DNA of 64,000 nucleotides from Phallusia mammillata (taxonomy: Eukaryota): the NCBI GenBank assembly GCA_965637545.1, contig OZ281498.1, forward strand, positions 16,368,001 through 16,432,000, written 5' to 3'. Both the position numbers and the translations under genes were made by a program. Positions 31,877 to 60,722 of the stretch are shown one piece after another (positions within the stretch are counted from its first letter, which is position 1; each line of letters starts with the position of its first letter). The notes under the pieces were generated by a model. That model was not told the origin of the DNA, ran no database searches, and was given only the letters and a program-made list of their open reading frames with translations.

Positions 31877-32811
31877 AACCAGCCTGGCCAGATCCCATTG
31901 GAAGAGTGGCTGGCAACAAAACGGGCTGAGCGACGTGCTGACAAAGCAGCCGAAGCAGCAGCCAAAGCAGCAGCCGTAGCAGCGCCCTCAACATCAGGTT
32001 AAATACCTGGCGAACGGCCCATTCCAGGGCCATCCAATTGTTTGTTTGTTTTTTGTAACAATTTGAGTTGTATTTGTGCACTGTATTTTAGTAATAGTTA
32101 TATTATTTATAATAGTTATATGTATTAAATGAGTGCGATTTCTACGTGTTTTACGGCATATTTGGTGCAATTTTGTATCTGTTTTAAGGTACATGTATTT
32201 AGCGAGTGCAATTTTGACGTGATTGTAGTTCGCTGTTATGAACAATATACTGTGACAATTTTGCTACTACGTTGGTGTTCAGTAAAGCAGCAAGTGCTAT
32301 CAAACTTATTATGAGGCAAAATTGCTGGGTAAGCGAGCAAAAAAGTCAGGTGGTCAGATATAAATAGAAAAAACGTATTGTGTTCGTTTTGGGGTAGAGT
32401 TAGTAAAACAAAAGACAATTTAGTTTATCGGTAGATGTAAATGTCATAGAAAATTGTCACGCAAGTGGTGCACAGACAGCAAATGTGCGGAGAAAGGTGT
32501 CCAGCTGAGGGCCAACAAAGATACAAATGAAATCAAATAGCAAATTCAAATTGACGTATTTCAGCAATTTTTTCAGCAGGACACCTTTTTGATAATTATC
32601 GGCAATTATGAGTAAACCTGAAAAACGGAGAAGTTATTATCACAACGCGGAAGATATCAACCCCGAATATGCTTAAAACTTCCCGTTCCGACTTTACCGG
32701 CGCTCTATTGCGCCGCTCCGCGGCGCAATCTCTTGCCCCTTTTCTTTTGCCCCCTTTCCGGCTACGTCTTGCCCCCTTTAGGTAGAAGATTGCGTCCCAG
32801 CTTTCGCGCTT
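31877..32811 (+). mobile_element. Putative 3'-end remnant of a U6-targeting (Dada-like) DNA element
   Basis: Non-NLR, non-array sequence. Carries a plus-strand ORF tail (31877-32002, NQPGQIPLEEWLATKRAERRADKAAEAAAKAAAVAAPSTSG*), a 10-bp hairpin (32707-32729), three TTGCCCC repeats and AGAAGAT. It ends in TCGCGCTT fused to U6 nt 64. Family assignment is inference; no DDE core is visible. Confidence 0.55.
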
Positions 32812-32818
32812 AGGGGCC

Positions 32819-32858
<40 letters not shown>

Positions 32859-32875
32859 ACTGCCGAAGCAAGTAC
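32812..32875 (-). pseudogene. U6: U6 snRNA 5' fragment (nt 1-64) at the left array junction
   Basis: GTACTTGCTTCGGCAGTACATATACTAAAATTGGAACGATACAGAGAAGATTAGCATGGCCCCT, then non-U6 AAGCGCGA. Confidence 0.95.
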
Positions 32876-32923
32876 ATTTAAGTTAACCCCACCAGCAATT
32901 TAGGTCCCACCTCGACGAGGGGT

Positions 32924-32942
32924 ATTTTCCGTTTGTGGGGAC
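32924..32942 (-). promoter_or_regulatory. Putative U6 proximal sequence element (PSE), repeated in every unit
   Basis: GTCCCCACAAACGGAAAAT lies at -67 to -49 from U6 +1. Position and pattern resemble the human U6 PSE (CTTACCGTAACTTGAAAGT). Only a weak TATA-like CTAAATT is present, at -28 to -22. Confidence 0.65.
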
Positions 32943-34074
32943 CGCCGTGCTGGGCTCCTGGTGTGACGTCACAACGCCAGACAGACGTTATGTGTACGTC
33001 GGGGCAGACGAAGGCCGTCAAACGCATCCATCTTGAGCGGCGTTTCGATTCGAAAGAAAAGGCAAAAAAACGTTGCCCCAGGTCCGTTACTCCTCCAGGG
33101 AAAAGCCGAGAAACCGAGATTTTCTCGCCGTGTGACACCTGTCGGTATGTGCTGTGTCAGTTCAGGACAAGATGCATCCGATAATAATAATCAAACGAAA
33201 GCTTAGCTTCCACTTATTCTCATGAGTCAACGCAATGTGAAAGCGTAGCCGTGCTGAAAAAGCTGAAAAGACCACCAAGCAGTGTCCGAAGGGATCAGTT
33301 AAGCAATTTGAGACCAACTACAGAAAGCGATTTATCAACACAGGCACGAAAGGTAAACCTGATGCAAGAAGTGCAGAGAATAAAGTTGGCGTTAGGTTCC
33401 TTTTATATTTTTTTCTCAACTACCGGATTTCCCCGTTTTCAAACTAACAGTATGCAAGGCAATGCGGTTATGTCTGTAGCCTATAGCTCTTTCTCGGCTC
33501 TAAAACAAGCGAAAGACAGCCGGTAGCCGGTTTAGGAAAGGTGTGTGAGTAGTGATGAAATACCACTTTTCTGCCATGTGAGAAATGATATTAAAGCAGA
33601 AAACTCACTTAAGATTTTTTTCCTCTTTTTTTCTTGTTGTTATTTTAGGTGCAGCTATAGTTGTTTTAGTACCCTTCCCGTTCTTCTGTGCTAGCTCCTA
33701 CGTCGGTGTCTTATTTTTTGCCTTCGTGTTCGGTTTTGATGCGTGGTGCTCTAAGAAAAAGGGAGGTCTGCTTCGCTGTGCGGCGCTGAACGAGACGGCC
33801 GGTCATTTAAACCGCACCGCGCGCGTTCAGCAGCGCCGCTTAGCGGTATGGGCGACAAAGGCACGCGTACCGCATAAAAACAGTCGCCGGTCTCTCACGT
33901 GTCTTTGATAATAATTAATCGATCCGGCGCACAAAACGAAGACTTCTGCGACAGAGACTCTCATCATGCGCTTATTTCGCCGCCTTTCAGTGTGTCTGTG
34001 AGCTGTCAAGACCCCAGGGGGCAGTATTTCTGCAAGATCTCATTTTTTTTCCGAGAAAGAAGAAATTAATGAGG

Positions 34075-34124
34075 AAAAATGAGGAACGCTTCACGATTTT
34101 GCGTGTCATCCTTGCGCAGGGGCC

Positions 34125-34164
<40 letters not shown>

Positions 34165-34181
34165 ACTGCCGAAGCAAGTAC
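34075..34181 (-). ncRNA. U6: U6 spliceosomal snRNA
   Basis: 107-nt U6 with 5' stem-loop, ACAGAGA box, AGC triad, ISL and TTTTT terminator. Confidence 0.98.
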
Positions 34182-35390
34182 ATTTAAGTTAACCCCACCA
34201 GCAATTTAGGTCCCACCTCGACGAGGGGTATTTTCCGTTTGTGGGGACCGCCGTGCTGGGCTCCTGGTGTGACGTCACAACGCCAGACAGACGTTATGTG
34301 TACGTCGGGGCAGACGAAGGCCGTCAAACGCATCCATCTTGAGCGGCGTTTCGATTCGAAAGAAAAGGCAAAAAAACGTTGCCCCAGGTCCGTTACTCCT
34401 CCAGGGAAAAGCCGAGAAACCGAGATTTTCTCGCCGTGTGACACCTGTCGGTATGTGCTGTGTCAGTTCAGGACAAGATGCTTTCGATAATAATAATCAA
34501 ACGAAAGCTTAGCTTCCACTTATTCTCATGAGTCAACGCAATGTGAAAGCGTAGCCGTGCTGAAAAAGCTGAAAAGACCACCAAGCAGTGTCCGAAGGGA
34601 TCAGTTAAGCAATTTGAGACCAACTACAGAAAGCGATTTATCAACACAGGCACGAAAGGTAAACCTGATGCAAGAAGTGCAGAGAATAAAGTTGGCGTTA
34701 GGTTCCTTTTATATATTTTTCTCAACTACCGGATTTCCCCGTTTTCAAACTAACAGTATGCAAGGCAATGCGGTTATGTCTGTAGCCTATAGCTCTTTCT
34801 CGGCTCTAAAACAAGCGAAAGACAGCCGGTAGCCGGTTTAGGAAAGGTGTGTGAGTAGTGATGAAATACCACTTTTCTGCCATGTGAGAAATGATAGTAA
34901 AGCAGAAAACTCACTTAAGATTTTTTTCCTCTTTTTTTCTTGTTGTTATTTTAGGTGCAGCTATAGTTGTTTTAGTACCCTTCCCGTTCTTCTGTGCTAG
35001 CTCCTACGTCGGTGTCTTATTTTTTGCCTTCGTGTTCGGTTTTGATGCGTGGTGCTCTAAGAAAAAGGGAGGTCTGCTTCGCTGTGCGGCGCTGTGCGGC
35101 GCTGAACGAGACGGCCGGTCATTTAAACCGCACCGCGCGCGTTCAGCAGCGCCGCTTAGCGGTATGGGCGACAAAGGCACGCGTACCGCATAAAAACAGT
35201 CGCCGGTCTCTCACGTGTCTTTGATAATAATTAATCGATCCGGCGCACAAAACGAAGACTTCTGCGACAGAGACTCTCATCATGCGCTTATTTCGCCGCC
35301 TTTCAGTGTGTCTGTGAGCTGTCAAGACCCCAGGGGGCAGTATTTCTGCAAGATCTCATTTTTTTTCCGAGAAAGAAGAAATTAATGAGG

Positions 35391-35440
35391 AAAAATGAGG
35401 AACGCTTCACGATTTTGCGTGTCATCCTTGCGCAGGGGCC

Positions 35441-35480
<40 letters not shown>

Positions 35481-35497
35481 ACTGCCGAAGCAAGTAC
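35391..35497 (-). ncRNA. U6: U6 spliceosomal snRNA
   Basis: Full-length copy matching 34075-34181. Confidence 0.98.
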
Positions 35498-36706
35498 ATT
35501 TAAGTTAACCCCACCAGCAATTTAGGTCCCACCTCGACGAGGGGTATTTTCCGTTTGTGGGGACCGCCGTGCTGGGCTCCTGGTGTGACGTCACAACGCC
35601 AGACAGACGTTATGTGTACGTCGGGGCAGACGAAGGCCGTCAAACGCATCCATCTTGAGCGGCGTTTCGATTCGAAAGAAAAGGCAAAAAAACGTTGCCC
35701 CAGGTCCGTTACTCCTCCAGGGAAAAGCCGAGAAACCGATATTTTCTCGCCGTGTGACACCTGTCGGTATGTGCTGTGTCAGTTCAGGACAAGATGCATC
35801 CGATAATAATAATCAAACGAAAGCTTAGCTTCCACTTATTCTCATGAGTCAACGCAATGTGAAAGCGTAGCCGTGCTGAAAAAGCTGAAAAGACCACCAA
35901 GCAGTGTCCGAAGGGATCAGTTAAGCAATTTGAGACCAACTACAGAAAGCGATTTATCAACACAGGCACGAAAGGTAAACCTGATGCAAGAAGTGCAGAG
36001 AATAAAGTTGGCGTTAGGTTCCTTTTATATATTTTTCTCAACTACCGGATTTCCCCGTTTTCAAACTAACAGTATGCAAGGCAATGCGGTTATGTCTGTA
36101 GCCTATAGCTCTTTCTCGGCTCTAAAACAAGCGAAAGACAGCCGGTAGCCGGTTTAGGAAAGGTGTGTGAGTAGTGATGAAATACCACTTTTCTGCCATG
36201 TGAGAAATGATAGTAAAGCAGAAAACTCACTTAAGATTTTTTTCCTCTTTTTTTCTTGTTGTTATTTTAGGTGCAGCTATAGTTGTTTTAGTACCCTTCC
36301 CGTTCTTCTGTGCTAGCTCCTACGTCGGTGTCTTATTTTTTGCCTTCGTGTTCGGTTTTGATGCGTGGTGCTCTAAGAAAAAGGGAGGTCTGCTTCGCTG
36401 TGCGGCGCTGTGCGGCGCTGAACGAGACGGCCGGTCATTTAAACCGCACCGCGCGCGTTCAGCAGCGCCGCTTAGCGGTATGGGCGACAAAGGCACGCGT
36501 ACCGCATAAAAACAGTCGCCGGTCTCTCACGTGTCTTTGATAATAATTAATCGATCCGGCGCACAAAACGAAGACTTCTGCGACAGAGACTCTCATCATG
36601 CGCTTATTTCGCCGCCTTTCAGTGTGTCTGTGAGCTGTCAAGACCCCAGGGGGCAGTATTTCTGCAAGATCTCATTTTTTTTCCGAGAAAGAAGAAATTA
36701 ATGAGG

Positions 36707-36756
36707 AAAAATGAGGAACGCTTCACGATTTTGCGTGTCATCCTTGCGCAGGGGCC

Positions 36757-36796
<40 letters not shown>

Positions 36797-36813
36797 ACTG
36801 CCGAAGCAAGTAC
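36707..36813 (-). ncRNA. U6: U6 spliceosomal snRNA
   Basis: Full-length copy matching 34075-34181. Confidence 0.98.
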
Positions 36814-38022
36814 ATTTAAGTTAACCCCACCAGCAATTTAGGTCCCACCTCGACGAGGGGTATTTTCCGTTTGTGGGGACCGCCGTGCTGGGCTCCTGGT
36901 GTGACGTCACAACGCCAGACAGACGTTATGTGTACGTCGGGGCAGACGAAGGCCGTCAAACGCATCCATCTTGAGCGGCGTTTCGATTCGAAAGAAAAGG
37001 CAAAAAAACGTTGCCCCAGGTCCGTTACTCCTCCAGGGAAAAGCCGAGAAACCGAGATTTTCTCGCCGTGTGACACCTGTCGGTATGTGCTGTGTCAGTT
37101 CAGGACAAGATGCATCCGATAATAATAATCAAACGAAAGCTTAGCTTCCACTTATTCTCATGAGTCAACGCAATGTGAAAGCGTAGCCGTGCTGAAAAAG
37201 CTGAAAAGACCACCAAGCAGTGTCCGAAGGGATCAGTTAAGCAATTTGAGACCAACTACAGAAAGCGATTTATCAACACAGGCACGAAAGGTAAACCTGA
37301 TGCAAGAAGTGCAGAGAATAAAGTTGGCGTTAGGTTCCTTTTATATATTTTTCTCAACTACCGGATTTCCCCGTTTTCAAACTAACAGTATGCAAGGCAA
37401 TGCGGTTATGTCTGTAGCCTATAGCTCTTTCTCGGCTCTAAAACAAGCGAAAGACAGCCGGTAGCCGGTTTAGGAAAGGTGTGTGAGTAGTGATGAAATA
37501 CCACTTTTCTGCCATGTGAGAAATGATAGTAAAGCAGAAAACTCACTTAAGATTTTTTTCCTCTTTTTTTCTTGTTGTTATTTTAGGTGCAGCTATAGTT
37601 GTTTTAGTACCCTTCCCGTTCTTCTGTGCTAGCTCCTACGTCGGTGTCTTATTTTTTGCCTTCGTGTTCGGTTTTGATGCGTGGTGCTCTAAGAAAAAGG
37701 GAGGTCTGCTTCGCTGTGCGGCGCTGTGCGGCGCTGAACGAGACGGCCGGTCATTTAAACCGCACCGCGCGCGTTCAGCAGCGCCGCTTAGCGGTATGGG
37801 CGACAAAGGCACGCGTACCGCATAAAAACAGTCGCCGGTCTCTCACGTGTCTTTGATAATAATTAATCGATCCGGCGCACAAAACGAAGACTTCTGCGAC
37901 AGAGACTCTCATCATGCGCTTATTTCGCCGCCTTTCAGTGTGTCTGTGAGCTGTCAAGACCCCAGGGGGCAGTATTTCTGCAAGATCTCATTTTTTTTCC
38001 GAGAAAGAAGAAATTAATGAGG

Positions 38023-38072
38023 AAAAATGAGGAACGCTTCACGATTTTGCGTGTCATCCTTGCGCAGGGGCC

Positions 38073-38112
<40 letters not shown>

Positions 38113-38129
38113 ACTGCCGAAGCAAGTAC
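38023..38129 (-). ncRNA. U6: U6 spliceosomal snRNA
   Basis: Full-length copy matching 34075-34181. Confidence 0.98.
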
Positions 38130-39328
38130 ATTTAAGTTAACCCCACCAGCAATTTAGGTCCCACCTCGACGAGGGGTATTTTCCGTTTGTGGGGACCGCC
38201 GTGCTGGGCTCCTGGTGTGACGTCACAACGCCAGACAGACGTTATGTGTACGTCGGGGCAGACGAAGGCCGTCAAACGCATCCATCTTGAGCGGCGTTTC
38301 GATTCGAAAGAAAAGGCAAAAAAACGTTGCCCCAGGTCCGTTACTCCTCCAGGGAAAAGCCGAGAAACCGAGATTTTCTCGCCGTGTGACACCTGTCGGT
38401 ATGTGCTGTGTCAGTTCAGGACAAGATGCATCCGATAATAATAATCAAACGAAAGCTTAGCTTCCACTTATTCTCATGAGTCAACGCAATGTGAAAGCGT
38501 AGCCGTGCTGAAAAAGCTGAAAAGACCACCAAGCAGTGTCCGAAGGGATCAGTTAAGCAATTTGAGACCAACTACAGAAAGCGATTTATCAACACAGGCA
38601 CGAAAGGTAAACCTGATGCAAGAAGTGCAGAGAATAAAGTTGGCGTTAGGTTCCTTTTATATATTTTTCTCAACTACCGGATTTCCCCGTTTTCAAACTA
38701 ACAGTATGCAAGGCAATGCGGTTATGTCTGTAGCCTATAGCTCTTTCTCGGCTCTAAAACAAGCGAAAGACAGCCGGTAGCCGGTTTAGGAAAGGTGTGT
38801 GAGTAGTGATGAAATACCACTTTTCTGCCATGTGAGAAATGATAGTAAAGCAGAAAACTCACTTAAGATTTTTTTCCTCTTTTTTTCTTGTTGTTATTTT
38901 AGGTGCAGCTATAGTTGTTTTAGTACCCTTCCCGTTCTTCTGTGCTAGCTCCTACGTCGGTGTCTTATTTTTTGCCTTCGTGTTCGGTTTTGATGCGTGG
39001 TGCTCTAAGAAAAAGGGAGGTCTGCTTCGCTGTGCGGCGCTGAACGAGACGGCCGGTCATTTAAACCGCACCGCGCGCGTTCAGCAGCGCCGCTTAGCGG
39101 TATGGGCGACAAAGGCACGCGTACCGCATAAAAACAGTCGCCGGTCTCTCACGTGTCTTTGATAATAATTAATCGATCCGGCGCACAAAACGAAGACTTC
39201 TGCGACAGAGACTCTCATCATGCGCTTATTTCGCCGCCTTTCAGTGTGTCTGTGAGCTGTCAAGACCCCAGGGGGCAGTATTTCTGCAAGATCTCATTTT
39301 TTTTCCGAGAAAGAAGAAATTAATGAGG

Positions 39329-39378
39329 AAAAATGAGGAACGCTTCACGATTTTGCGTGTCATCCTTGCGCAGGGGCC

Positions 39379-39418
<40 letters not shown>

Positions 39419-39435
39419 ACTGCCGAAGCAAGTAC
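39329..39435 (-). ncRNA. U6: U6 spliceosomal snRNA
   Basis: Full-length copy matching 34075-34181. Confidence 0.98.
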
Positions 39436-40644
39436 ATTTAAGTTAACCCCACCAGCAATTTAGGTCCCACCTCGACGAGGGGTATTTTCCGTTTGTGGGG
39501 ACCGCCGTGCTGGGCTCCTGGTGTGACGTCACAACGCCAGACAGACGTTATGTGTACGTCGGGGCAGACGAAGGCCGTCAAACGCATCCATCTTGAGCGG
39601 CGTTTCGATTCGAAAGAAAAGGCAAAAAAACGTTGCCCCAGGTCCGTTACTCCTCCAGGGAAAAGCCGAGAAACCGATATTTTCTCGCCGTGTGACACCT
39701 GTCGGTATGTGCTGTGTCAGTTCAGGACAAGATGCATCCGATAATAATAATCAAACGAAAGCTTAGCTTCCACTTATTCTCATGAGTCAACGCAATGTGA
39801 AAGCGTAGCCGTGCTGAAAAAGCTGAAAAGACCACCAAGCAGTGTCCGAAGGGATCAGTTAAGCAATTTGAGACCAACTACAGAAAGCGATTTATCAACA
39901 CAGGCACGAAAGGTAAACCTGATGCAAGAAGTGCAGAGAATAAAGTTGGCGTTAGGTTCCTTTTATATATTTTTCTCAACTACCGGATTTCCCCGTTTTC
40001 AAACTAACAGTATGCAAGGCAATGCGGTTATGTCTGTAGCCTATAGCTCTTTCTCGGCTCTAAAACAAGCGAAAGACAGCCGGTAGCCGGTTTAGGAAAG
40101 GTGTGTGAGTAGTGATGAAATACCACTTTTCTGCCATGTGAGAAATGATAGTAAAGCAGAAAACTCACTTAAGATTTTTTTCCTCTTTTTTTCTTGTTGT
40201 TATTTTAGGTGCAGCTATAGTTGTTTTAGTACCCTTCCCGTTCTTCTGTGCTAGCTCCTACGTCGGTGTCTTATTTTTTGCCTTCGTGTTCGGTTTTGAT
40301 GCGTGGTGCTCTAAGAAAAAGGGAGGTCTGCTTCGCTGTGCGGCGCTGTGCGGCGCTGAACGAGACGGCCGGTCATTTAAACCGCACCGCGCGCGTTCAG
40401 CAGCGCCGCTTAGCGGTATGGGCGACAAAGGCACGCGTACCGCATAAAAACAGTCGCCGGTCTCTCACGTGTCTTTGATAATAATTAATCGATCCGGCGC
40501 ACAAAACGAAGACTTCTGCGACAGAGACTCTCATCATGCGCTTATTTCGCCGCCTTTCAGTGTGTCTGTGAGCTGTCAAGACCCCAGGGGGCAGTATTTC
40601 TGCAAGATCTCATTTTTTTTCCGAGAAAGAAGAAATTAATGAGG

Positions 40645-40694
40645 AAAAATGAGGAACGCTTCACGATTTTGCGTGTCATCCTTGCGCAGGGGCC

Positions 40695-40734
<40 letters not shown>

Positions 40735-40751
40735 ACTGCCGAAGCAAGTAC
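40645..40751 (-). ncRNA. U6: U6 spliceosomal snRNA
   Basis: Full-length copy matching 34075-34181. Confidence 0.98.
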
Positions 40752-41960
40752 ATTTAAGTTAACCCCACCAGCAATTTAGGTCCCACCTCGACGAGGGGTA
40801 TTTTCCGTTTGTGGGGACCGCCGTGCTGGGCTCCTGGTGTGACGTCACAACGCCAGACAGACGTTATGTGTACGTCGGGGCAGACGAAGGCCGTCAAACG
40901 CATCCATCTTGAGCGGCGTTTCGATTCGAAAGAAAAGGCAAAAAAACGTTGCCCCAGGTCCGTTACTCCTCCAGGGAAAAGCCGAGAAACCGAGATTTTC
41001 TCGCCGTGTGACACCTGTCGGTATGTGCTGTGTCAGTTCAGGACAAGATGCATCCGATAATAATAATCAAACGAAAGCTTAGCTTCCACTTATTCTCATG
41101 AGTCAACGCAATGTGAAAGCGTAGCCGTGCTGAAAAAGCTGAAAAGACCACCAAGCAGTGTCCGAAGGGATCAGTTAAGCAATTTGAGACCAACTACAGA
41201 AAGCGATTTATCAACACAGGCACGAAAGGTAAACCTGATGCAAGAAGTGCAGAGAATAAAGTTGGCGTTAGGTTCCTTTTATATATTTTTCTCAACTACC
41301 GGATTTCCCCGTTTTCAAACTAACAGTATGCAAGGCAATGCGGTTATGTCTGTAGCCTATAGCTCTTTCTCGGCTCTAAAACAAGCGAAAGACAGCCGGT
41401 AGCCGGTTTAGGAAAGGTGTGTGAGTAGTGATGAAATACCACTTTTCTGCCATGTGAGAAATGATAGTAAAGCAGAAAACTCACTTAAGATTTTTTTCCT
41501 CTTTTTTTCTTGTTGTTATTTTAGGTGCAGCTATAGTTGTTTTAGTACCCTTCCCGTTCTTCTGTGCTAGCTCCTACGTCGGTGTCTTATTTTTTGCCTT
41601 CGTGTTCGGTTTTGATGCGTGGTGCTCTAAGAAAAAGGGAGGTCTGCTTCGCTGTGCGGCGCTGTGCGGCGCTGAACGAGACGGCCGGTCATTTAAACCG
41701 CACCGCGCGCGTTCAGCAGCGCCGCTTAGCGGTATGGGCGACAAAGGCACGCGTACCGCATAAAAACAGTCGCCGGTCTCTCACGTGTCTTTGATAATAA
41801 TTAATCGATCCGGCGCACAAAACGAAGACTTCTGCGACAGAGACTCTCATCATGCGCTTATTTCGCCGCCTTTCAGTGTGTCTGTGAGCTGTCAAGACCC
41901 CAGGGGGCAGTATTTCTGCAAGATCTCATTTTTTTTCCGAGAAAGAAGAAATTAATGAGG

Positions 41961-42010
41961 AAAAATGAGGAACGCTTCACGATTTTGCGTGTCATCCTTG
42001 CGCAGGGGCC

Positions 42011-42050
<40 letters not shown>

Positions 42051-42067
42051 ACTGCCGAAGCAAGTAC
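41961..42067 (-). ncRNA. U6: U6 spliceosomal snRNA
   Basis: Full-length copy matching 34075-34181. Confidence 0.98.
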
Positions 42068-43266
42068 ATTTAAGTTAACCCCACCAGCAATTTAGGTCCC
42101 ACCTCGACGAGGGGTATTTTCCGTTTGTGGGGACCGCCGTGCTGGGCTCCTGGTGTGACGTCACAACGCCAGACAGACGTTATGTGTACGTCGGGGCAGA
42201 CGAAGGCCGTCAAACGCATCCATCTTGAGCGGCGTTTCGATTCGAAAGAAAAGGCAAAAAAACGTTGCCCCAGGTCCGTTACTCCTCCAGGGAAAAGCCG
42301 AGAAACCGAGATTTTCTCGCCGTGTGACACCTGTCGGTATGTGCTGTGTCAGTTCAGGACAAGATGCATCCGATAATAATAATCAAACGAAAGCTTAGCT
42401 TCCACTTATTCTCATGAGTCAACGCAATGTGAAAGCGTAGCCGTGCTGAAAAAGCTGAAAAGACCACCAAGCAGTGTCCGAAGGGATCAGTTAAGCAATT
42501 TGAGACCAACTACAGAAAGCGATTTATCAACACAGGCACGAAAGGTAAACCTGATGCAAGAAGTGCAGAGAATAAAGTTGGCGTTAGGTTCCTTTTATAT
42601 ATTTTTCTCAACTACCGGATTTCCCCGTTTTCAAACTAACAGTATGCAAGGCAATGCGGTTATGTCTGTAGCCTATAGCTCTTTCTCGGCTCTAAAACAA
42701 GCGAAAGACAGCCGGTAGCCGGTTTAGGAAAGGTGTGTGAGTAGTGATGAAATACCACTTTTCTGCCATGTGAGAAATGATAGTAAAGCAGAAAACTCAC
42801 TTAAGATTTTTTTCCTCTTTTTTTCTTGTTGTTATTTTAGGTGCAGCTATAGTTGTTTTAGTACCCTTCCCGTTCTTCTGTGCTAGCTCCTACGTCGGTG
42901 TCTTATTTTTTGCCTTCGTGTTCGGTTTTGATGCGTGGTGCTCTAAGAAAAAGGGAGGTCTGCTTCGCTGTGCGGCGCTGAACGAGACGGCCGGTCATTT
43001 AAACCGCACCGCGCGCGTTCAGCAGCGCCGCTTAGCGGTATGGGCGACAAAGGCACGCGTACCGCATAAAAACAGTCGCCGGTCTCTCACGTGTCTTTGA
43101 TAATAATTAATCGATCCGGCGCACAAAACGAAGACTTCTGCGACAGAGACTCTCATCATGCGCTTATTTCGCCGCCTTTCAGTGTGTCTGTGAGCTGTCA
43201 AGACCCCAGGGGGCAGTATTTCTGCAAGATCTCATTTTTTTTCCGAGAAAGAAGAAATTAATGAGG

Positions 43267-43316
43267 AAAAATGAGGAACGCTTCACGATTTTGCGTGTCA
43301 TCCTTGCGCAGGGGCC

Positions 43317-43356
<40 letters not shown>

Positions 43357-43373
43357 ACTGCCGAAGCAAGTAC
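43267..43373 (-). ncRNA. U6: U6 spliceosomal snRNA
   Basis: Full-length copy matching 34075-34181. Confidence 0.98.
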
Positions 43374-44582
43374 ATTTAAGTTAACCCCACCAGCAATTTA
43401 GGTCCCACCTCGACGAGGGGTATTTTCCGTTTGTGGGGACCGCCGTGCTGGGCTCCTGGTGTGACGTCACAACGCCAGACAGACGTTATGTGTACGTCGG
43501 GGCAGACGAAGGCCGTCAAACGCATCCATCTTGAGCGGCGTTTCGATTCGAAAGAAAAGGCAAAAAAACGTTGCCCCAGGTCCGTTACTCCTCCAGGGAA
43601 AAGCCGAGAAACCGAGATTTTCTCGCCGTGTGACACCTGTCGGTATGTGCTGTGTCAGTTCAGGACAAGATGCATCCGATAATAATAATCAAACGAAAGC
43701 TTAGCTTCCACTTATTCTCATGAGTCAACGCAATGTGAAAGCGTAGCCGTGCTGAAAAAGCTGAAAAGACCACCAAGCAGTGTCCGAAGGGATCAGTTAA
43801 GCAATTTGAGACCAACTACAGAAAGCGATTTATCAACACAGGCACGAAAGGTAAACCTGATGCAAGAAGTGCAGAGAATAAAGTTGGCGTTAGGTTCCTT
43901 TTATATATTTTTCTCAACTACCGGATTTCCCCGTTTTCAAACTAACAGTATGCAAGGCAATGCGGTTATGTCTGTAGCCTATAGCTCTTTCTCGGCTCTA
44001 AAACAAGCGAAAGACAGCCGGTAGCCGGTTTAGGAAAGGTGTGTGAGTAGTGATGAAATACCACTTTTCTGCCATGTGAGAAATGATAGTAAAGCAGAAA
44101 ACTCACTTAAGATTTTTTTCCTCTTTTTTTCTTGTTGTTATTTTAGGTGCAGCTATAGTTGTTTTAGTACCCTTCCCGTTCTTCTGTGCTAGCTCCTACG
44201 TCGGTGTCTTATTTTTTGCCTTCGTGTTCGGTTTTGATGCGTGGTGCTCTAAGAAAAAGGGAGGTCTGCTTCGCTGTGCGGCGCTGTGCGGCGCTGAACG
44301 AGACGGCCGGTCATTTAAACCGCACCGCGCGCGTTCAGCAGCGCCGCTTAGCGGTATGGGCGACAAAGGCACGCGTACCGCATAAAAACAGTCGCCGGTC
44401 TCTCACGTGTCTTTGATAATAATTAATCGATCCGGCGCACAAAACGAAGACTTCTGCGACAGAGACTCTCATCATGCGCTTATTTCGCCGCCTTTCAGTG
44501 TGTCTGTGAGCTGTCAAGACCCCAGGGGGCAGTATTTCTGCAAGATCTCATTTTTTTTCCGAGAAAGAAGAAATTAATGAGG

Positions 44583-44632
44583 AAAAATGAGGAACGCTTC
44601 ACGATTTTGCGTGTCATCCTTGCGCAGGGGCC

Positions 44633-44672
<40 letters not shown>

Positions 44673-44689
44673 ACTGCCGAAGCAAGTAC
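44583..44689 (-). ncRNA. U6: U6 spliceosomal snRNA
   Basis: Full-length copy matching 34075-34181. Confidence 0.98.
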
Positions 44690-45897
44690 ATTTAAGTTAA
44701 CCCCACCAGCAATTTAGGTCCCACCTCGACGAGGGGTATTTTCCGTTTGTGGGGACCGCCGTGCTGGGCTCCTGGTGTGACGTCACAACGCCAGACAGAC
44801 GTTATGTGTACGTCGGGGCAGACGAAGCCGTCAAACGCATCCATCTTGAGCGGCGTTTCGATTCGAAAGAAAAGGCAAAAAAACGTTGCCCCAGGTCCGT
44901 TACTCCTCCAGGGAAAAGCCGAGAAACCGAGATTTTCTCGCCGTGTGACACCTGTCGGTATGTGCTGTGTCAGTTCAGGACAAGATGCATCCGATAATAA
45001 TAATCAAACGAAAGCTTAGCTTCCACTTATTCTCATGAGTCAACGCAATGTGAAAGCGTAGCCGTGCTGAAAAAGCTGAAAAGACCACCAAGCAGTGTCC
45101 GAAGGGATCAGTTAAGCAATTTGAGACCAACTACAGAAAGCGATTTATCAACACAGGCACGAAAGGTAAACCTGATGCAAGAAGTGCAGAGAATAAAGTT
45201 GGCGTTAGGTTCCTTTTATATATTTTTCTCAACTACCGGATTTCCCCGTTTTCAAACTAACAGTATGCAAGGCAATGCGGTTATGTCTGTAGCCTATAGC
45301 TCTTTCTCGGCTCTAAAACAAGCGAAAGACAGCCGGTAGCCGGTTTAGGAAAGGTGTGTGAGTAGTGATGAAATACCACTTTTCTGCCATGTGAGAAATG
45401 ATAGTAAAGCAGAAAACTCACTTAAGATTTTTTTCCTCTTTTTTTCTTGTTGTTATTTTAGGTGCAGCTATAGTTGTTTTAGTACCCTTCCCGTTCTTCT
45501 GTGCTAGCTCCTACGTCGGTGTCTTATTTTTTGCCTTCGTGTTCGGTTTTGATGCGTGGTGCTCTAAGAAAAAGGGAGGTCTGCTTCGCTGTGCGGCGCT
45601 GTGCGGCGCTGAACGAGACGGCCGGTCATTTAAACCGCACCGCGCGCGTTCAGCAGCGCCGCTTAGCGGTATGGGCGACAAAGGCACGCGTACCGCATAA
45701 AAACAGTCGCCGGTCTCTCACGTGTCTTTGATAATAATTAATCGATCCGGCGCACAAAACGAAGACTTCTGCGACAGAGACTCTCATCATGCGCTTATTT
45801 CGCCGCCTTTCAGTGTGTCTGTGAGCTGTCAAGACCCCAGGGGGCAGTATTTCTGCAAGATCTCATTTTTTTTCCGAGAAAGAAGAAATTAATGAGG

Positions 45898-45947
45898 AAA
45901 AATGAGGAACGCTTCACGATTTTGCGTGTCATCCTTGCGCAGGGGCC

Positions 45948-45987
<40 letters not shown>

Positions 45988-46004
45988 ACTGCCGAAGCAA
46001 GTAC
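45898..46004 (-). ncRNA. U6: U6 spliceosomal snRNA
   Basis: Full-length copy matching 34075-34181. Confidence 0.98.
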
Positions 46005-47213
46005 ATTTAAGTTAACCCCACCAGCAATTTAGGTCCCACCTCGACGAGGGGTATTTTCCGTTTGTGGGGACCGCCGTGCTGGGCTCCTGGTGTGACGTCA
46101 CAACGCCAGACAGACGTTATGTGTACGTCGGGGCAGACGAAGGCCGTCAAACGCATCCATCTTGAGCGGCGTTTCGATTCGAAAGAAAAGGCAAAAAAAC
46201 GTTGCCCCAGGTCCGTTACTCCTCCAGGGAAAAGCCGAGAAACCGATATTTTCTCGCCGTGTGACACCTGTCGGTATGTGCTGTGTCAGTTCAGGACAAG
46301 ATGCATCCGATAATAATAATCAAACGAAAGCTTAGCTTCCACTTATTCTCATGAGTCAACGCAATGTGAAAGCGTAGCCGTGCTGAAAAAGCTGAAAAGA
46401 CCACCAAGCAGTGTCCGAAGGGATCAGTTAAGCAATTTGAGACCAACTACAGAAAGCGATTTATCAACACAGGCACGAAAGGTAAACCTGATGCAAGAAG
46501 TGCAGAGAATAAAGTTGGCGTTAGGTTCCTTTTATATATTTTTCTCAACTACCGGATTTCCCCGTTTTCAAACTAACAGTATGCAAGGCAATGCGGTTAT
46601 GTCTGTAGCCTATAGCTCTTTCTCGGCTCTAAAACAAGCGAAAGACAGCCGGTAGCCGGTTTAGGAAAGGTGTGTGAGTAGTGATGAAATACCACTTTTC
46701 TGCCATGTGAGAAATGATAGTAAAGCAGAAAACTCACTTAAGATTTTTTTCCTCTTTTTTTCTTGTTGTTATTTTAGGTGCAGCTATAGTTGTTTTAGTA
46801 CCCTTCCCGTTCTTCTGTGCTAGCTCCTACGTCGGTGTCTTATTTTTTGCCTTCGTGTTCGGTTTTGATGCGTGGTGCTCTAAGAAAAAGGGAGGTCTGC
46901 TTCGCTGTGCGGCGCTGTGCGGCGCTGAACGAGACGGCCGGTCATTTAAACCGCACCGCGCGCGTTCAGCAGCGCCGCTTAGCGGTATGGGCGACAAAGG
47001 CACGCGTACCGCATAAAAACAGTCGCCGGTCTCTCACGTGTCTTTGATAATAATTAATCGATCCGGCGCACAAAACGAAGACTTCTGCGACAGAGACTCT
47101 CATCATGCGCTTATTTCGCCGCCTTTCAGTGTGTCTGTGAGCTGTCAAGACCCCAGGGGGCAGTATTTCTGCAAGATCTCATTTTTTTTCCGAGAAAGAA
47201 GAAATTAATGAGG

Positions 47214-47263
47214 AAAAATGAGGAACGCTTCACGATTTTGCGTGTCATCCTTGCGCAGGGGCC

Positions 47264-47303
<40 letters not shown>

Positions 47304-47320
47304 ACTGCCGAAGCAAGTAC
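47214..47320 (-). ncRNA. U6: U6 spliceosomal snRNA
   Basis: Full-length copy matching 34075-34181. Confidence 0.98.
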
Positions 47321-48527
47321 ATTTAAGTTAACCCCACCAGCAATTTAGGTCCCACCTCGACGAGGGGTATTTTCCGTTTGTGGGGACCGCCGTGCTGGGC
47401 TCCTGGTGTGACGTCACAACGCCAGACAGACGTTATGTGTACGTCGGGGCAGACGAAGGCCGTCAAACGCATCCATCTTGAGCGGCGTTTCGATTCGAAA
47501 GAAAAGGCAAAAAAACGTTGCCCCAGGTCCGTTACTCCTCCAGGGAAAAGCCGAGAAACCGAGATTTTCTCGCCGTGTGACACCTGTCGGTATGTGCTGT
47601 GTCAGTTCAGGACAAGATGCATCCGATAATAATAATCAAACGAAAGCTTAGCTTCCACTTATTCTCATGAGTCAACGCAATGTGAAAGCGTAGCCGTGCT
47701 GAAAAAGCTGAAAAGACCACCAAGCAGTGTCCGAAGGGATCAGTTAAGCAATTTGAGACCAACTACAGAAAGCGATTTATCAACACAGGCACGAAAGGTA
47801 AACCTGATGCAAGAAGTGCAGAGAATAAAGTTGGCGTTAGGTTCCTTTTATATATTTTTCTCAACTACCGGATTTCCCCGTTTTCAAACTAACAGTATGC
47901 AAGGCAATGCGGTTATGTCTGTAGCCTATAGCTCTTTCTCGGCTCTAAAACAAGCGAAAGACAGCCGGTAGCCGGTTTAGGAAAGGTGTGTGAGTAGTGA
48001 TGAAATACCACTTTTCTGCCATGTGAGAAATGATAGTAAAGCAGAAAACTCACTTAAGATTTTTTTCCTCTTTTTTTCTTGTTGTTATTTTAGGTGCAGC
48101 TATAGTTGTTTTAGTACCCTTCCCGTTCTTCTGTGCTAGCTCCTACGTCGGTGTCTTATTTTTTGCCTTCGTGTTCGGTTTTGATGCGTGGTGCTCTAAG
48201 AAAAAGGGAGGTCTGCTTCGCTGTGCGGCGCTGTGCGGCGCTGAACGAGACGGCCGGTCATTTAAACCGCACCGCGCGCGTTCAGCAGCGCCGCTTAGCG
48301 GTATGGGCGACAAAGGCACGCGTACCGCATAAAAACAGTCGCCGGTCTCTCACGTGTCTTTGATAATAATTAATCGATCCGGCGCACAAAACGAAGACTT
48401 CTGCGACAGAGACTCTCATCATGCGCTTATTCGCCGCCTTTCAGTGTGTCTGTGAGCTGTCAAGACCCCAGGGGGCAGTATTTCTGCAAGATCTCATTTT
48501 TTTCCGAGAAAGAAGAAATTAATGAGG

Positions 48528-48577
48528 AAAAATGAGGAACGCTTCACGATTTTGCGTGTCATCCTTGCGCAGGGGCC

Positions 48578-48617
<40 letters not shown>

Positions 48618-48634
48618 ACTGCCGAAGCAAGTAC
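48528..48634 (-). ncRNA. U6: U6 spliceosomal snRNA
   Basis: Full-length copy matching 34075-34181. Confidence 0.98.
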
Positions 48635-49833
48635 ATTTAAGTTAACCCCACCAGCAATTTAGGTCCCACCTCGACGAGGGGTATTTTCCGTTTGTGGGGA
48701 CCGTCGTGCTGGGCTCCTGGTGTGACGTCACAACGCCAGACAGACGTTATGTGTACGTCGGGGCAGACGAAGGCCGTCAAACGCATCCATCTTGAGCGGC
48801 GTTTCGATTCGAAAGAAAAGGCAAAAAAACGTTGCCCCAGGTCCGTTACTCCTCCAGGGAAAAGCCGAGAAACCGAGATTTTCTCGCCGTGTGACACCTG
48901 TCGGTATGTGCTGTGTCAGTTCAGGACAAGATGCATCCGATAATAATAATCAAACGAAAGCTTAGCTTCCACTTATTCTCATGAGTCAACGCAATGTGAA
49001 AGCGTAGCCGTGCTGAAAAAGCTGAAAAGACCACCAAGCAGTGTCCGAAGGGATCAGTTAAGCAATTTGAGACCAACTACAGAAAGCGATTTATCAACAC
49101 AGGCACGAAAGGTAAACCTGATGCAAGAAGTGCAGAGAATAAAGTTGGCGTTAGGTTCCTTTTATATATTTTTCTCAACTACCGGATTTCCCCGTTTTCA
49201 AACTAACAGTATGCAAGGCAATGCGGTTATGTCTGTAGCCTATAGCTCTTTCTCGGCTCTAAAACAAGCGAAAGACAGCCGGTAGCCGGTTTAGGAAAGG
49301 TGTGTGAGTAGTGATGAAATACCACTTTTCTGCCATGTGAGAAATGATAGTAAAGCAGAAAACTCACTTAAGATTTTTTTCCTCTTTTTTTCTTGTTGTT
49401 ATTTTAGGTGCAGCTATAGTTGTTTTAGTACCCTTCCCGTTCTTCTGTGCTAGCTCCTACGTCGGTGTCTTATTTTTTGCCTTCGTGTTCGGTTTTGATG
49501 CGTGGTGCTCTAAGAAAAAGAGAGGTCTGCTTCGCTGTGCGGCGCTGAACGAGACGGCCGGTCATTTAAACCGCACCGCGCGCGTTCAGCAGCGCCGCTT
49601 AGCGGTATGGGCGACAAAGGCACGCGTACCGCATAAAAACAGTCGCCGGTCTCTCACGTGTCTTTGATAATAATTAATCGATCCGGCGCACAAAACGAAG
49701 ACTTCTGCGACAGAGACTCTCATCATGCGCTTATTTCGCCGCCTTTCAGTGTGTCTGTGAGCTGTCAAGACCCCAGGGGGCAGTATTTCTGCAAGATCTC
49801 ATTTTTTTTCCGAGAAAGAAGAAATTAATGAGG

Positions 49834-49883
49834 AAAAATGAGGAACGCTTCACGATTTTGCGTGTCATCCTTGCGCAGGGGCC

Positions 49884-49923
<40 letters not shown>

Positions 49924-49940
49924 ACTGCCGAAGCAAGTAC
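49834..49940 (-). ncRNA. U6: U6 spliceosomal snRNA
   Basis: Full-length copy matching 34075-34181. Confidence 0.98.
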
Positions 49941-51148
49941 ATTTAAGTTAACCCCACCAGCAATTTAGGTCCCACCTCGACGAGGGGTATTTTCCGTTTG
50001 TGGGGACCGCCGTGCTGGGCTCCTGGTGTGACGTCACAACGCCAGACAGACGTTATGTGTACGTCGGGGCAGACGAAGGCCGTCAAACGCATCCATCTTG
50101 AGCGGCGTTTCGATTCGAAAGAAAAGGCAAAAAAACGTTGCCCCAGGTCCGTTACTCCTCCAGGGAAAAGCCGAGAAACCGAGATTTTCTCGCCGTGTGA
50201 CACCTGTCGGTATGTGCTGTGTCAGTTCAGGACAAGATGCATCCGATAATAATAATCAAACGAAAGCTTAGCTTCCACTTATTCTCATGAGTCAACGCAA
50301 TGTGAAAGCGTAGCCGTGCTGAAAAAGCTGAAAAGACCACCAAGCAGTGTCCGAAGGGATCAGTTAAGCAATTTGAGACCAACTACAGAAAGCGATTTAT
50401 CAACACAGGCACGAAAGGTAAACCTGATGCAAGAAGTGCAGAGAATAAAGTTGGCGTTAGGTTCCTTTTATATATTTTTCTCAACTACCGGATTTCCCCG
50501 TTTTCAAACTAACAGTATGCAAGGCAATGCGGTTATGTCTGTAGCCTATAGCTCTTTCTCGGCTCTAAAACAAGCGAAAGACAGCCGGTAGCCGGTTTAG
50601 GAAAGGTGTGTGAGTAGTGATGAAATACCACTTTTCTGCCATGTGAGAAATGATAGTAAAGCAGAAAACTCACTTAAGATTTTTTTCCTCTTTTTTTCTT
50701 GTTGTTATTTTAGGTGCAGCTATAGTTGTTTTAGTACCCTTCCCGTTCTTCTGTGCTAGCTCCTACGTCGGTGTCTTATTTTTTGCCTTCGTGTTCGGTT
50801 TTGATGCGTGGTGCTCTAAGAAAAAGGGAGGTCTGCTTCGCTGTGCGGCGCTGTGCGGCGCTGAACGAGACGGCCGGTCATTTAAACCGCACCGCGCGCG
50901 TTCAGCAGCGCCGCTTAGCGGTATGGGCGACAAAGGCACGCGTACCGCATAAAAACAGTCGCCGGTCTCTCACGTGTCTTTGATAATAATTAATCGATCC
51001 GGCGCACAAAACGAAGACTTCTGCGACAGAGACTCTCATCATGCGCTTATTTCGCCGCCTTTCAGTGTGTCTGTGAGCTGTCAAGACCCCAGGGGGCAGT
51101 ATTTCTGCAAGATCTCATTTTTTTCCGAGAAAGAAGAAATTAATGAGG

Positions 51149-51198
51149 AAAAATGAGGAACGCTTCACGATTTTGCGTGTCATCCTTGCGCAGGGGCC

Positions 51199-51238
<40 letters not shown>

Positions 51239-51255
51239 ACTGCCGAAGCAAGTAC
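51149..51255 (-). ncRNA. U6: U6 spliceosomal snRNA
   Basis: Full-length copy matching 34075-34181. Confidence 0.98.
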
Positions 51256-52454
51256 ATTTAAGTTAACCCCACCAGCAATTTAGGTCCCACCTCGACGAGG
51301 GGTATTTTCCGTTTGTGGGGACCGTCGTGCTGGGCTCCTGGTGTGACGTCACAACGCCAGACAGACGTTATGTGTACGTCGGGGCAGACGAAGGCCGTCA
51401 AACGCATCCATCTTGAGCGGCGTTTCGATTCGAAAGAAAAGGCAAAAAAACGTTGCCCCAGGTCCGTTACTCCTCCAGGGAAAAGCCGAGAAACCGAGAT
51501 TTTCTCGCCGTGTGACACCTGTCGGTATGTGCTGTGTCAGTTCAGGACAAGATGCATCCGATAATAATAATCAAACGAAAGCTTAGCTTCCACTTATTCT
51601 CATGAGTCAACGCAATGTGAAAGCGTAGCCGTGCTGAAAAAGCTGAAAAGACCACCAAGCAGTGTCCGAAGGGATCAGTTAAGCAATTTGAGACCAACTA
51701 CAGAAAGCGATTTATCAACACAGGCACGAAAGGTAAACCTGATGCAAGAAGTGCAGAGAATAAAGTTGGCGTTAGGTTCCTTTTATATATTTTTCTCAAC
51801 TACCGGATTTCCCCGTTTTCAAACTAACAGTATGCAAGGCAATGCGGTTATGTCTGTAGCCTATAGCTCTTTCTCGGCTCTAAAACAAGCGAAAGACAGC
51901 CGGTAGCCGGTTTAGGAAAGGTGTGTGAGTAGTGATGAAATACCACTTTTCTGCCATGTGAGAAATGATAGTAAAGCAGAAAACTCACTTAAGATTTTTT
52001 TCCTCTTTTTTTCTTGTTGTTATTTTAGGTGCAGCTATAGTTGTTTTAGTACCCTTCCCGTTCTTCTGTGCTAGCTCCTACGTCGGTGTCTTATTTTTTG
52101 CCTTCGTGTTCGGTTTTGATGCGTGGTGCTCTAAGAAAAAGAGAGGTCTGCTTCGCTGTGCGGCGCTGAACGAGACGGCCGGTCATTTAAACCGCACCGC
52201 GCGCGTTCAGCAGCGCCGCTTAGCGGTATGGGCGACAAAGGCACGCGTACCGCATAAAAACAGTCGCCGGTCTCTCACGTGTCTTTGATAATAATTAATC
52301 GATCCGGCGCACAAAACGAAGACTTCTGCGACAGAGACTCTCATCATGCGCTTATTTCGCCGCCTTTCAGTGTGTCTGTGAGCTGTCAAGACCCCAGGGG
52401 GCAGTATTTCTGCAAGATCTCATTTTTTTTCCGAGAAAGAAGAAATTAATGAGG

Positions 52455-52504
52455 AAAAATGAGGAACGCTTCACGATTTTGCGTGTCATCCTTGCGCAGG
52501 GGCC

Positions 52505-52544
<40 letters not shown>

Positions 52545-52561
52545 ACTGCCGAAGCAAGTAC
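52455..52561 (-). ncRNA. U6: U6 spliceosomal snRNA
   Basis: Full-length copy matching 34075-34181. Confidence 0.98.
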
Positions 52562-53760
52562 ATTTAAGTTAACCCCACCAGCAATTTAGGTCCCACCTCG
52601 ACGAGGGGTATTTTCCGTTTGTGGGGACCGCCGTGCTGGGCTCCTGGTGTGACGTCACAACGCCAGACAGACGTTATGTGTACGTCGGGGCAGACGAAGG
52701 CCGTCAAACGCATCCATCTTGAGCGGCGTTTCGATTCGAAAGAAAAGGCAAAAAAACGTTGCCCCAGGTCCGTTACTCCTCCAGGGAAAAGCCGAGAAAC
52801 CGAGATTTTCTCGCCGTGTGACACCTGTCGGTATGTGCTGTGTCAGTTCAGGACAAGATGCATCCGATAATAATAATCAAACGAAAGCTTAGCTTCCACT
52901 TATTCTCATGAGTCAACGCAATGTGAAAGCGTAGCCGTGCTGAAAAAGCTGAAAAGACCACCAAGCAGTGTCCGAAGGGATCAGTTAAGCAATTTGAGAC
53001 CAACTACAGAAAGCGATTTATCAACACAGGCACGAAAGGTAAACCTGATGCAAGAAGTGCAGAGAATAAAGTTGGCGTTAGGTTCCTTTTATATATTTTT
53101 CTCAACTACCGGATTTCCCCGTTTTCAAACTAACAGTATGCAAGGCAATGCGGTTATGTCTGTAGCCTATAGCTCTTTCTCGGCTCTAAAACAAGCGAAA
53201 GACAGCCGGTAGCCGGTTTAGGAAAGGTGTGTGAGTAGTGATGAAATACCACTTTTCTGCCATGTGAGAAATGATAGTAAAGCAGAAAACTCACTTAAGA
53301 TTTTTTTCCTCTTTTTTTCTTGTTGTTATTTTAGGTGCAGCTATAGTTGTTTTAGTACCCTTCCCGTTCTTCTGTGCTAGCTCCTACGTCGGTGTCTTAT
53401 TTTTTGCCTTCGTGTTCGGTTTTGATGCGTGGTGCTCTAAGAAAAAGGGAGGTCTGCTTCGCTGTGCGGCGCTGAACGAGACGGCCGGTCATTTAAACCG
53501 CACCGCGCGCGTTCAGCAGCGCCGCTTAGCGGTATGGGCGACAAAGGCACGCGTACCGCATAAAAACAGTCGCCGGTCTCTCACGTGTCTTTGATAATAA
53601 TTAATCGATCCGGCGCACAAAACGAAGACTTCTGCGACAGAGACTCTCATCATGCGCTTATTTCGCCGCCTTTCAGTGTGTCTGTGAGCTGTCAAGACCC
53701 CAGGGGGCAGTATTTCTGCAAGATCTCATTTTTTTTCCGAGAAAGAAGAAATTAATGAGG

Positions 53761-53797
53761 AAAAATGAGGAACGCTTCACGATTTTGCGTGTCATCC
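53761..53797 (-). pseudogene. U6: U6 snRNA 3' fragment (nt 71-107) at the right array junction
   Basis: GGATGACACGCAAAATCGTGAAGCGTTCCTCATTTTT, preceded in U6 sense by non-U6 ...GCAGTC-AAGCGCGA. Confidence 0.95.
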
Positions 53798-54440
53798 TCG
53801 CGCTTGACTGCAACCCATCTTCCCAAAATTTGGAACATTTGGGATTTTAGGGATTCCTATTGGTTCGTTTGCCCCGTGCTCGCTCGACCGTGACCGACAC
53901 TTGCGCGAAACTCAAAATCCAGGTACCTGTGTCAATGAACAGGATTTTGTGCGTTTTTCGCCTTTCTTAGGCCTGAATATCTGTGTTTTTGAAGTAAACT
54001 GTTTGTTTCAAACTGCCAATGCTCAAGAAAAACCTTGATTTTGCCGAGAATACTGCAGACGGGAAACTTTACACTGAGTTTTGTCCCAAGTTGCAGCAGG
54101 TTTCGGTAATTACCGCCAGACGACAATAATCACTTTTTTCTGGCCGCTGCTGATACTTGAGTTGTCAATCAGGAAAGACTTTTTCATGTCACTATCGACA
54201 CTGCACCAAAAAGGTATGTTGCAACAGTTTGTTTGGAAACCCTGTTGGAAGCATGTTTGCTGTATGACTGTATGTTTAGCTTTAGTAGAACTATTGGTTG
54301 TTGTTACAAGATCTGTTCAGACAGTCAAGGTTTTGCCTGTTAATTTGATTTCTAAGATATTGTGATAGAATGTATTTGAACCAGAACTATTACTCGCCAA
54401 TAGAGACATTTCAAAGCAAGGCATTCATTCATACACAGGT
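53798..54440 (+). mobile_element. Putative 5'-end remnant of the same U6-targeting element (right boundary uncertain)
   Basis: Starts with TCGCGCTT fused to U6 nt 71. ATCTTC sits at the same spacing as in U6, and one TTGCCCC motif is present. Only stop-interrupted plus-strand coding-like stretches follow. Confidence 0.45.
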
Positions 54441-58783: not shown

Positions 58784-58974
58784 CTGCAACAAAACAGTAG
58801 TTTCATTACCATCGAAAAATGTTTGTGACTAAATTTTTTGCTTCTTGGGAATTGAGTCTCAACATCAAGTATGTATTTTCAAAGCATTAAAAGTGATATT
58901 GGGGAAAAAAATCAACAAAAAATTAGAAAGGTGGCTTTCTGATATACTTCCATTTTATATATTCTATACGACAT

Positions 58975-60684: not shown

Positions 60685-60722
60685 AATTACATCACAAGAT
60701 GCAACTCATCAAACACTGTTTT

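Follow-up and report, generated by a model that had tools for sequence, protein, structure and literature searches.

How could an array of U6 small nuclear RNA (snRNA) genes come to lie between two protein-coding genes, with both its ends cut at the same site of U6? This question is raised by a locus of Phallusia mammillata (assembly GCA_965637545.1, contig OZ281498.1, forward-strand positions 16,368,001 to 16,432,000). The whole stretch of 64,000 nucleotides that was analysed is called the window, and all coordinates refer to it. It carries a tandem U6 array flanked on either side by an 8-bp direct repeat and by a sequence that faces away from the array. The two flanking sequences are very likely the termini of a transposon family of the Dada-U6 type. 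The locus suggests that a transposon moved a whole U6 array to a new place.

Dada-U6 elements lie between U6 1-70 and U6 65-104, with a duplication of 65-GCGCAA-70, and Dada elements are without terminal inverted repeats (PMC3706591). The target duplications reported for Dada are 6-7 bp long, insertion into U6 arrays is the usual habit of Dada-U6, and non-U6 flanks on one side have been reported (PMC3706591). Dada-tA swaps its target hexamer for GCGCAA (PMC3706591). Hexamer replacement on one or both sides was found in several Dada families, and it was suggested that an old flanking hexamer travels with the element (PMC8869645). An earlier model-made reading of the window (the original prediction) had named the U6 site, the absence of long terminal inverted repeats and target replacement with reference to Kojima and Jurka 2013, all in agreement with that paper (PMC3706591).

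Array borders and adjoining termini

Within 34075-52561, the window contains 15 full U6 genes, all in minus orientation and each scoring 116.7 bits with Rfam. When the block is cut at its border site, it falls into 16 units of 1306 or 1316 bp that are >99.5% alike, the last one being 6 bp short. The two length forms are interleaved along the array and differ by a 10-bp CGCTGTGCGG repeat, which is present in two or three copies. Among the 1316 columns of the unit 26 are variable, and the leftmost unit has two private substitutions. The G+C content is 47% in the array and 35-40% in the flanks. The array comprises a whole number of units opened at a single U6 site, minus U6 nt 65-70. Of the 16 whole units originally proposed, the unit lengths stand, if 6 bp are subtracted, but the genes number 15 whole copies and one that is split between the borders.

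At the left border, ..GGTAGAAGATTGCGTCCCAGCTT is followed by TCGCGCTT and AGGGGCCATGCTAATCTTCT.. (U6 nt 64 to 1), and the core region reads CCCAGCTT-TCGCGCTT-AGGGGCC. At the right border, U6 nt 107 to 71 end with GTCATCC, followed by TCGCGCTT and GACTGCAACCCATCTTC (core region GTCATCC-TCGCGCTT-GACTGC). The corresponding part of intact units is GTCATCC-TTGCGC-AGGGGCC. This means that the U6 hexamer GCGCAA is gone at both borders, with TCGCGCTT in its place on each side. Across the 64 kb, this 8-mer was found at the two borders only. It is better read as a 6-bp hexamer (TCGCGC, sense GCGCGA) joined to the final two nucleotides of the 3' terminus (AA in sense, TT in the 8-mer). The border layout, the replacement of TTGCGC by one 8-mer and the spacings of 13 nt and 19 nt had all been described in the original prediction. 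The same layout was obtained here at both borders, comparison with intact units confirmed the replacement, and the spacings are correct.

The borders at U6 nt 64 and nt 71 are the Dada-U6 junction positions (nt 64/65 and 70/71). Since the missing GCGCAA is exactly the published Dada-U6 duplication, the array ends sit at Dada cleavage positions.

The sequences next to the core carry further features of Dada-U6. The boxes TCTTCTCTG / CAGAGAAGA are represented by TCTTCTacc in the 5' arm and ttgGGAAGA in the 3' arm, with 6 of 9 positions matching in each. Both are located 14 nt from the hexamer, the distance seen in U6 and in published Dada ends: the 5' side reads GCGCGA-AAGCTGGGACGCAA-TCTTCT and the 3' side GGAAGA-TGGGTTGCAGTCAA-GCGCGA. 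The spacing (A/G)GAAGA-N14-hexamer of the 3' arm is that of published Dada-U6 3' ends. By chance, the box pattern is expected at about 1e-6 per site, and elsewhere in the 43 kb of flank GAAGA-N32..36-TCTTC is absent. Apart from the boxes, the arms are unlike each other, and long terminal inverted repeats are absent. The terminal 20 nt of the left arm, AAGCTGGGACGCAATCTTCT, are identical at 17 positions to the 5' terminus of Dada-U6_DPu, AGGCTGGGGCGTAATCTTCT. Outside the box, 11 of 14 positions are identical (P=4e-5). The left arm is nearer to the Dada-U6_DPu terminus than the published termini are to each other. Its boundary is backed by read contigs from two sequencing runs, which both keep ..CCCAGCTT and then diverge (X2 and X8; see below).

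The 5' arm also contains a perfect palindrome with a 10-bp stem, ATTGCGCCGC-TCC-GCGGCGCAAT (32707-32729), and three direct GGGGCAA repeats (TTGCCCC(C)TTT on the plus strand, 32733-32779). A fourth TTGCCCC is present in the right flank at 53869. The palindrome and the TTGCCCC repeats could be protein-binding sites of the element. A 10-nt string, GCGCCGCGGA, is common to the 5' arm region and the non-U6 flank of two Daphnia Dada-U6 copies (Fig. S2, PMC3706591).

Read contigs and surroundings of the array

Logan contigs of four independent runs (X1, X2, X7 and X8) were compared with 52570-56400. P. mammillata U6 is close to human U6; hence, this stretch leaves out whole U6 genes. All contig observations refer to the matches listed.

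In all four runs, word depth in the right flank is 4-20x the single-copy level beside the terminus, where it is highest, and reaches single copy by ~54362. Such a profile is expected of a transposon end that is common to deletion derivatives. Diverged paralogs of the right flank were seen as loose ends in the contigs. Within the multi-copy part, a short frame with an ATG start extends from 54019 to 54100 and ends at GT (MLKKNLDFAENTADGKLYTEFCPKLQQ). This frame could represent an exon, belonging either to the element or to a gene family.

In a contig of X2, the left arm, represented by its final 30 nt (32774-32803), continues into TCGCGCTT-GACTGC...; the 8-mer appears a single time there, and the array is absent. 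Because the assembly word (31 nt) exceeds the 8-bp repeat, this joined form is not a graph artefact. The circle junction CAGCTT-TCGCGCTT-GACTGC, which the original prediction had anticipated, is therefore present in the reads. It had also been stated that the same junction found as ordinary single-copy DNA would speak against transposon ends. This is not the case: The junction lies in multi-copy DNA, and in X8 the same two termini, with one change in the 3' terminus, are joined around a different hexamer, GGCCCT. Both facts fit joined transposon ends and not an ordinary single-copy site. As the hexamers of X2 and X8 differ while AA stays, the hexamer between the ends varies, as it would between transposon ends.

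The 3' arm was encountered in further contexts. In X2, the 8-mer plus right arm also stand behind two other neighbours, and at least four different neighbours of the 3' arm occur in this run. U6 up to nt 71 joined to TCGCGCTT is present in X2 as well; the arm that follows is a diverged one (12/19), meaning that the same core also links U6 to a related element. In X1 and X7, a contig runs from 32695 directly into 53825 and thus lacks the 135 bp made up of the two arms and the core. This form may be the repair scar of a cut junction.

Taken together, the Dada-U6 features found here are the specific U6 site, the boxes at 14 nt, the likeness of the 5' terminus and a 3' arm that is multi-copy in several contexts. 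Junction positions, box spacing, 5' terminal likeness and the behaviour of the 3' arm in the reads make it very likely that both flanks represent outward-facing termini of a Dada-U6-type family. The outward-facing Dada-like ends of the original prediction are supported in particular by the 17/20 match of the left arm, the varied neighbours of the multi-copy right arm and the joined-ends junction in the reads.

The U6 unit is present at about 40-100x single copy per genome in the contigs of the four runs, which means that other U6 arrays exist in the genome. In X7 and X8, a long contig was found in which array spacer begins at 53081 after unrelated DNA; another genomic array thus has its end within the spacer rather than at the Dada site. 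In X1, X7 and X8, other 3' halves of U6 break off at nt 74 next to AAGCTGTGTCCAATGTAAGG.., which starts with AAGCTG like the 5' arm, in the opposite orientation. Further 3' halves break off at nt 76 next to TCAGAGGAACCCGG.. Both kinds may be junctions of other U6-targeting elements.

The features of the locus are compiled in the table.

Features of the U6 locus in the window. The arms are very likely of the Dada-U6 type; a dot denotes no strand.
Feature	Position	Strand	Remarks
Left flank, end of leucine-rich repeat (LRR) gene duplication to Dada-type arm	31877..32695	-	last 30 nt (32666-32695) joined to 53825 in X1/X7 contigs
5' arm, very likely Dada-U6-type	32696..32803	-	read outward from array; terminal 20 nt AAGCTGGGACGCAATCTTCT
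Left copy of 8-bp direct repeat TCGCGCTT	32804..32811	.	core hexamer TCGCGC + TT; replaces U6 hexamer TTGCGC
Tandem U6 snRNA gene array	32812..53797	-	~21 kb; 16 unit lengths minus 6 bp; 15 whole genes
U6 nt 1-64, 5' part of split gene	32812..32875	-	Rfam U6, 62.5 bits, model positions 1-62
U6 nt 71-107, 3' part of split gene	53761..53797	-	identical to the corresponding stretch of whole units
Right copy of 8-bp direct repeat TCGCGCTT	53798..53805	.	same 8-mer precedes the right arm in at least three further contexts in X2
3' arm, very likely Dada-U6-type	53806..53824	-	minus strand: GGGAAGA + TGGGTTGCAGTC(AA), ends at core
Multi-copy inner part of 3' region	53825..54360	-	word depth in four runs

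The array sits between a copy of an LRR gene and a kinase-like gene, which is encoded on the minus strand from 54983. Leftward from 31876, the left flank is an inverted copy, 88% identical, of the LRR gene region at 16684-24052. The entire inverted duplication comprises 16684-24052 and 23620-31876 with about 86-88% identity. The second copy stops abruptly at 31876, and of the 286 codons in the frame of copy 1 it is missing the initial ~175. The adjoining 31877..32695 segment yielded neither a Pfam nor an Rfam match, and 31877-32803 has no paralog within the window. This segment may be the inner part of the 5' region of the element, or host DNA. In the flanks, no Rfam match was obtained even at a lax threshold, and no tRNA genes were found. 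U6 fragments, a second element terminus or parts of array units are not present elsewhere in the window (43 kb of flank). Exact-protein look-up, a homolog search with the nearest exon and metagenome scans revealed no other copies or alleles. The rebuilt array-less site was considered as a decayed U6 gene and rejected, as its local alignment to U6 scores no higher than shuffles. Two inverted copies of ~1.1 kb with 89% identity (2113-3427 / 58970-60690) are probably an unrelated interspersed repeat.

Proposed exchange and alternative explanations

The simplest single event that could have produced the locus is one exchange between a joined-ends Dada junction and a closed U6 array. We give this course of events an even chance. 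The donor would be a head-to-tail joined junction (3' end - hexamer - 5' end) without U6, and the target the Dada site of a single U6 gene in a closed, that is circular or looped-out, array of 16 units. The ends of the junction, cut with an 8-bp stagger, would be joined to either side of the U6 hexamer. The 8 bp of the junction (2 nt of the 3' terminus plus GCGCGA) would then appear on both sides, whereas U6 GCGCAA would be lost. As an outcome, the U6 array would be found at a new locus, with the LRR gene copy on one side and the kinase-like gene on the other. Chemically, the two 3' ends could be nicked on opposite strands and attack both sides of the U6 hexamer, with the core strands staying as flaps and serving repair instead of the target hexamer. 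As for the placement, the junction may have resided in a chromosome and taken up a circle of the array, or a circular element may have inserted into an array, with capture of the larger circle at a later time. The anatomy of the junctions, the Dada likeness of the termini, the multi-copy 3' arm and the joined form without an array are observations, whereas the sequence of steps, the closed array and the work of a Dada transposase from another part of the genome are inferred. Two details agree with the exchange. If a joined form is cut with an 8-bp stagger, the AA of the 3' terminus should reappear at the 5' junction, as it does, and the replaced hexamer matches Dada families that carry their own flanking hexamer. 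In a wider sense, Dada-type transposases might use a joined-ends (circle or tandem) junction as active donor that swaps with the target site and retains the junction core. This generalization is tentative and somewhat doubtful.

Several points weigh against the proposed exchange and the assignment of the arms to Dada-U6. The window contains neither a Dada transposase nor a full element: Its frames are LRR, kinase-like and Tmem26-like, a DDE transposase with the DxxH motif and the CCCC and CCHC zinc fingers was not found in it, and only ends are present here. Each side carries 8-bp AAGCGCGA instead of a 6-7 bp target duplication GCGCAA/GCGAAA, and the hexamer of U6 is absent. The 3' arm matches published 3' ends at 10 of 20 positions, with likeness only in box and spacing. 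The multi-copy measurement covers the right flank and 3' arm. The array-less joined contig of X2 may stem from another locus. The join of 32695 to 53825 in X1 and X7 may mean that the arms are only 108 and 19 bp long or, instead, that the 135-bp piece is an insert in another repeat. Finally, the closed U6 array is an assumption, and circles were not seen.

Alternatively, as in the second scenario of the original prediction, a non-autonomous Dada element might have been inserted normally in a U6 array; a circle of the element plus 16 units, formed by recombination, might then have broken inside the element and been captured at a chromosome break between the two neighbouring genes. This would produce the same junctions and the same whole unit number and would not require joined ends at this locus; the joined-ends contigs could derive from tandem copies elsewhere, and both flanks turn into other DNA within about 0.5-0.9 kb. 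However, AA plus hexamer on the 5' side would still call for integration from a joined form. Capture of such a circle also predicts that 31877 neighbours the outer end of the right repeat in intact copies, which was not seen, and the right repeat fades gradually without a clear end. We consider it unlikely. A further scenario comprises two insertions 16 units apart in a longer resident array whose remaining units were later deleted together with the outer parts of the insertions. It agrees with the normal habit of Dada-U6 and with its one-sided non-U6 flanks (PMC3706591), and private variants like those of the leftmost unit are often seen in end units of old arrays. Yet it needs two separate deletions, each removing the other U6 half, and no U6 fragment is left in the flanks. 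The same 8 bp with 2 nt of the 3' terminus at the 5' junction are unexplained, as is the array-less joined form. The lack of remaining U6 halves and the unaccounted-for AA of the 5' junction make this scenario less likely, and we regard it as rather improbable.

It could also be argued that no transposase was involved. A U6 circle might have been linearised and then taken up through a staggered break or microhomology, in which case the Dada-like features would be chance or promoter motifs; TTTCGCGC also resembles an E2F site. The 8-bp duplication is not of Dada length, array-less sequence does exist, and generic local alignment does not lift the rebuilt site above shuffles. On the other side stand the rarity of the box pattern and its absence from the rest of the flanks, the 17/20 match of the left arm, the array ends exactly at Dada cleavage positions and a multi-copy arm that changes its neighbours exactly at the terminus. 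A chance capture is very unlikely. Misplacement of the array by the assembler is favoured by the high copy number of the unit, which makes arrays hard to place. In addition, no contig among the matches listed spans the right junction exactly as assembled (across 53790-53834). But both junctions are exact and have the 8-mer in common, the join of U6 (nt 71) to TCGCGCTT was found in an independent run, and the variants follow an ordered pattern along the units. An assembly artefact is hardly probable at all.

To our knowledge, Dada elements are the only DNA transposons that hit specific sites in small-RNA genes, and neither their mode of integration nor the reason for hexamer replacement in some families is known. 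The exchange proposed above would place the locus and the array-less joined ends in the reads as two sides of one reaction in natural DNA, which makes the joined-ends model directly testable. If the model is true, a joined-ends donor would explain the published 'flank replacement'. Moreover, joined ends residing in a chromosome would allow an element to take up and relocate whole U6 arrays, i.e. transposon-driven spread of snRNA arrays. This would be a concrete mechanism by which multi-copy snRNA arrays could reach new chromosomal sites, here between immune-type genes.

Comparison with known systems

Among the papers searched, those mentioning Dada-U6 describe neither ends that face outward around a U6 array, nor a U6-targeting lineage with joined ends, nor replacement of the U6 hexamer. 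Reversed-ends or hybrid-element transposition occurs with maize Ac/Ds and Drosophila P, and circle junctions with abutted ends are formed by IS256, IS911 and IS30. In these systems, too, non-enclosing ends act together, join a target and rearrange DNA or take up a circular target, and the likeness is one of mechanism only. We know of none among them that targets a small-RNA gene or moves a gene array.

Among the closest known systems is Dada-U6 (PMC3706591), especially Dada-U6_DPu of Daphnia pulex, which has the same junctions, boxes at 14 nt and no long inverted repeats. In contrast to Dada-U6, the ends described here face outward around a U6 array, are flanked by 8-bp AAGCGCGA, and lack the U6 hexamer and a transposase. 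Dada-tA and Dada-tY likewise replace the target hexamer by an element-borne hexamer (PMC3706591, PMC8869645). These elements target tRNA genes and exchange six for six, whereas the locus in P. mammillata belongs to a U6-targeting lineage, 6 bp were replaced by 8 bp, and a joined-ends form, a possible carrier of the hexamer, is present in the reads. For tandem Dada-U1 (Fig. S3, PMC3706591), no target gene array between the joined ends has been described, but its head-to-tail order, 3' end - hexamer - 5' end, is the same as that of the joined ends found here.

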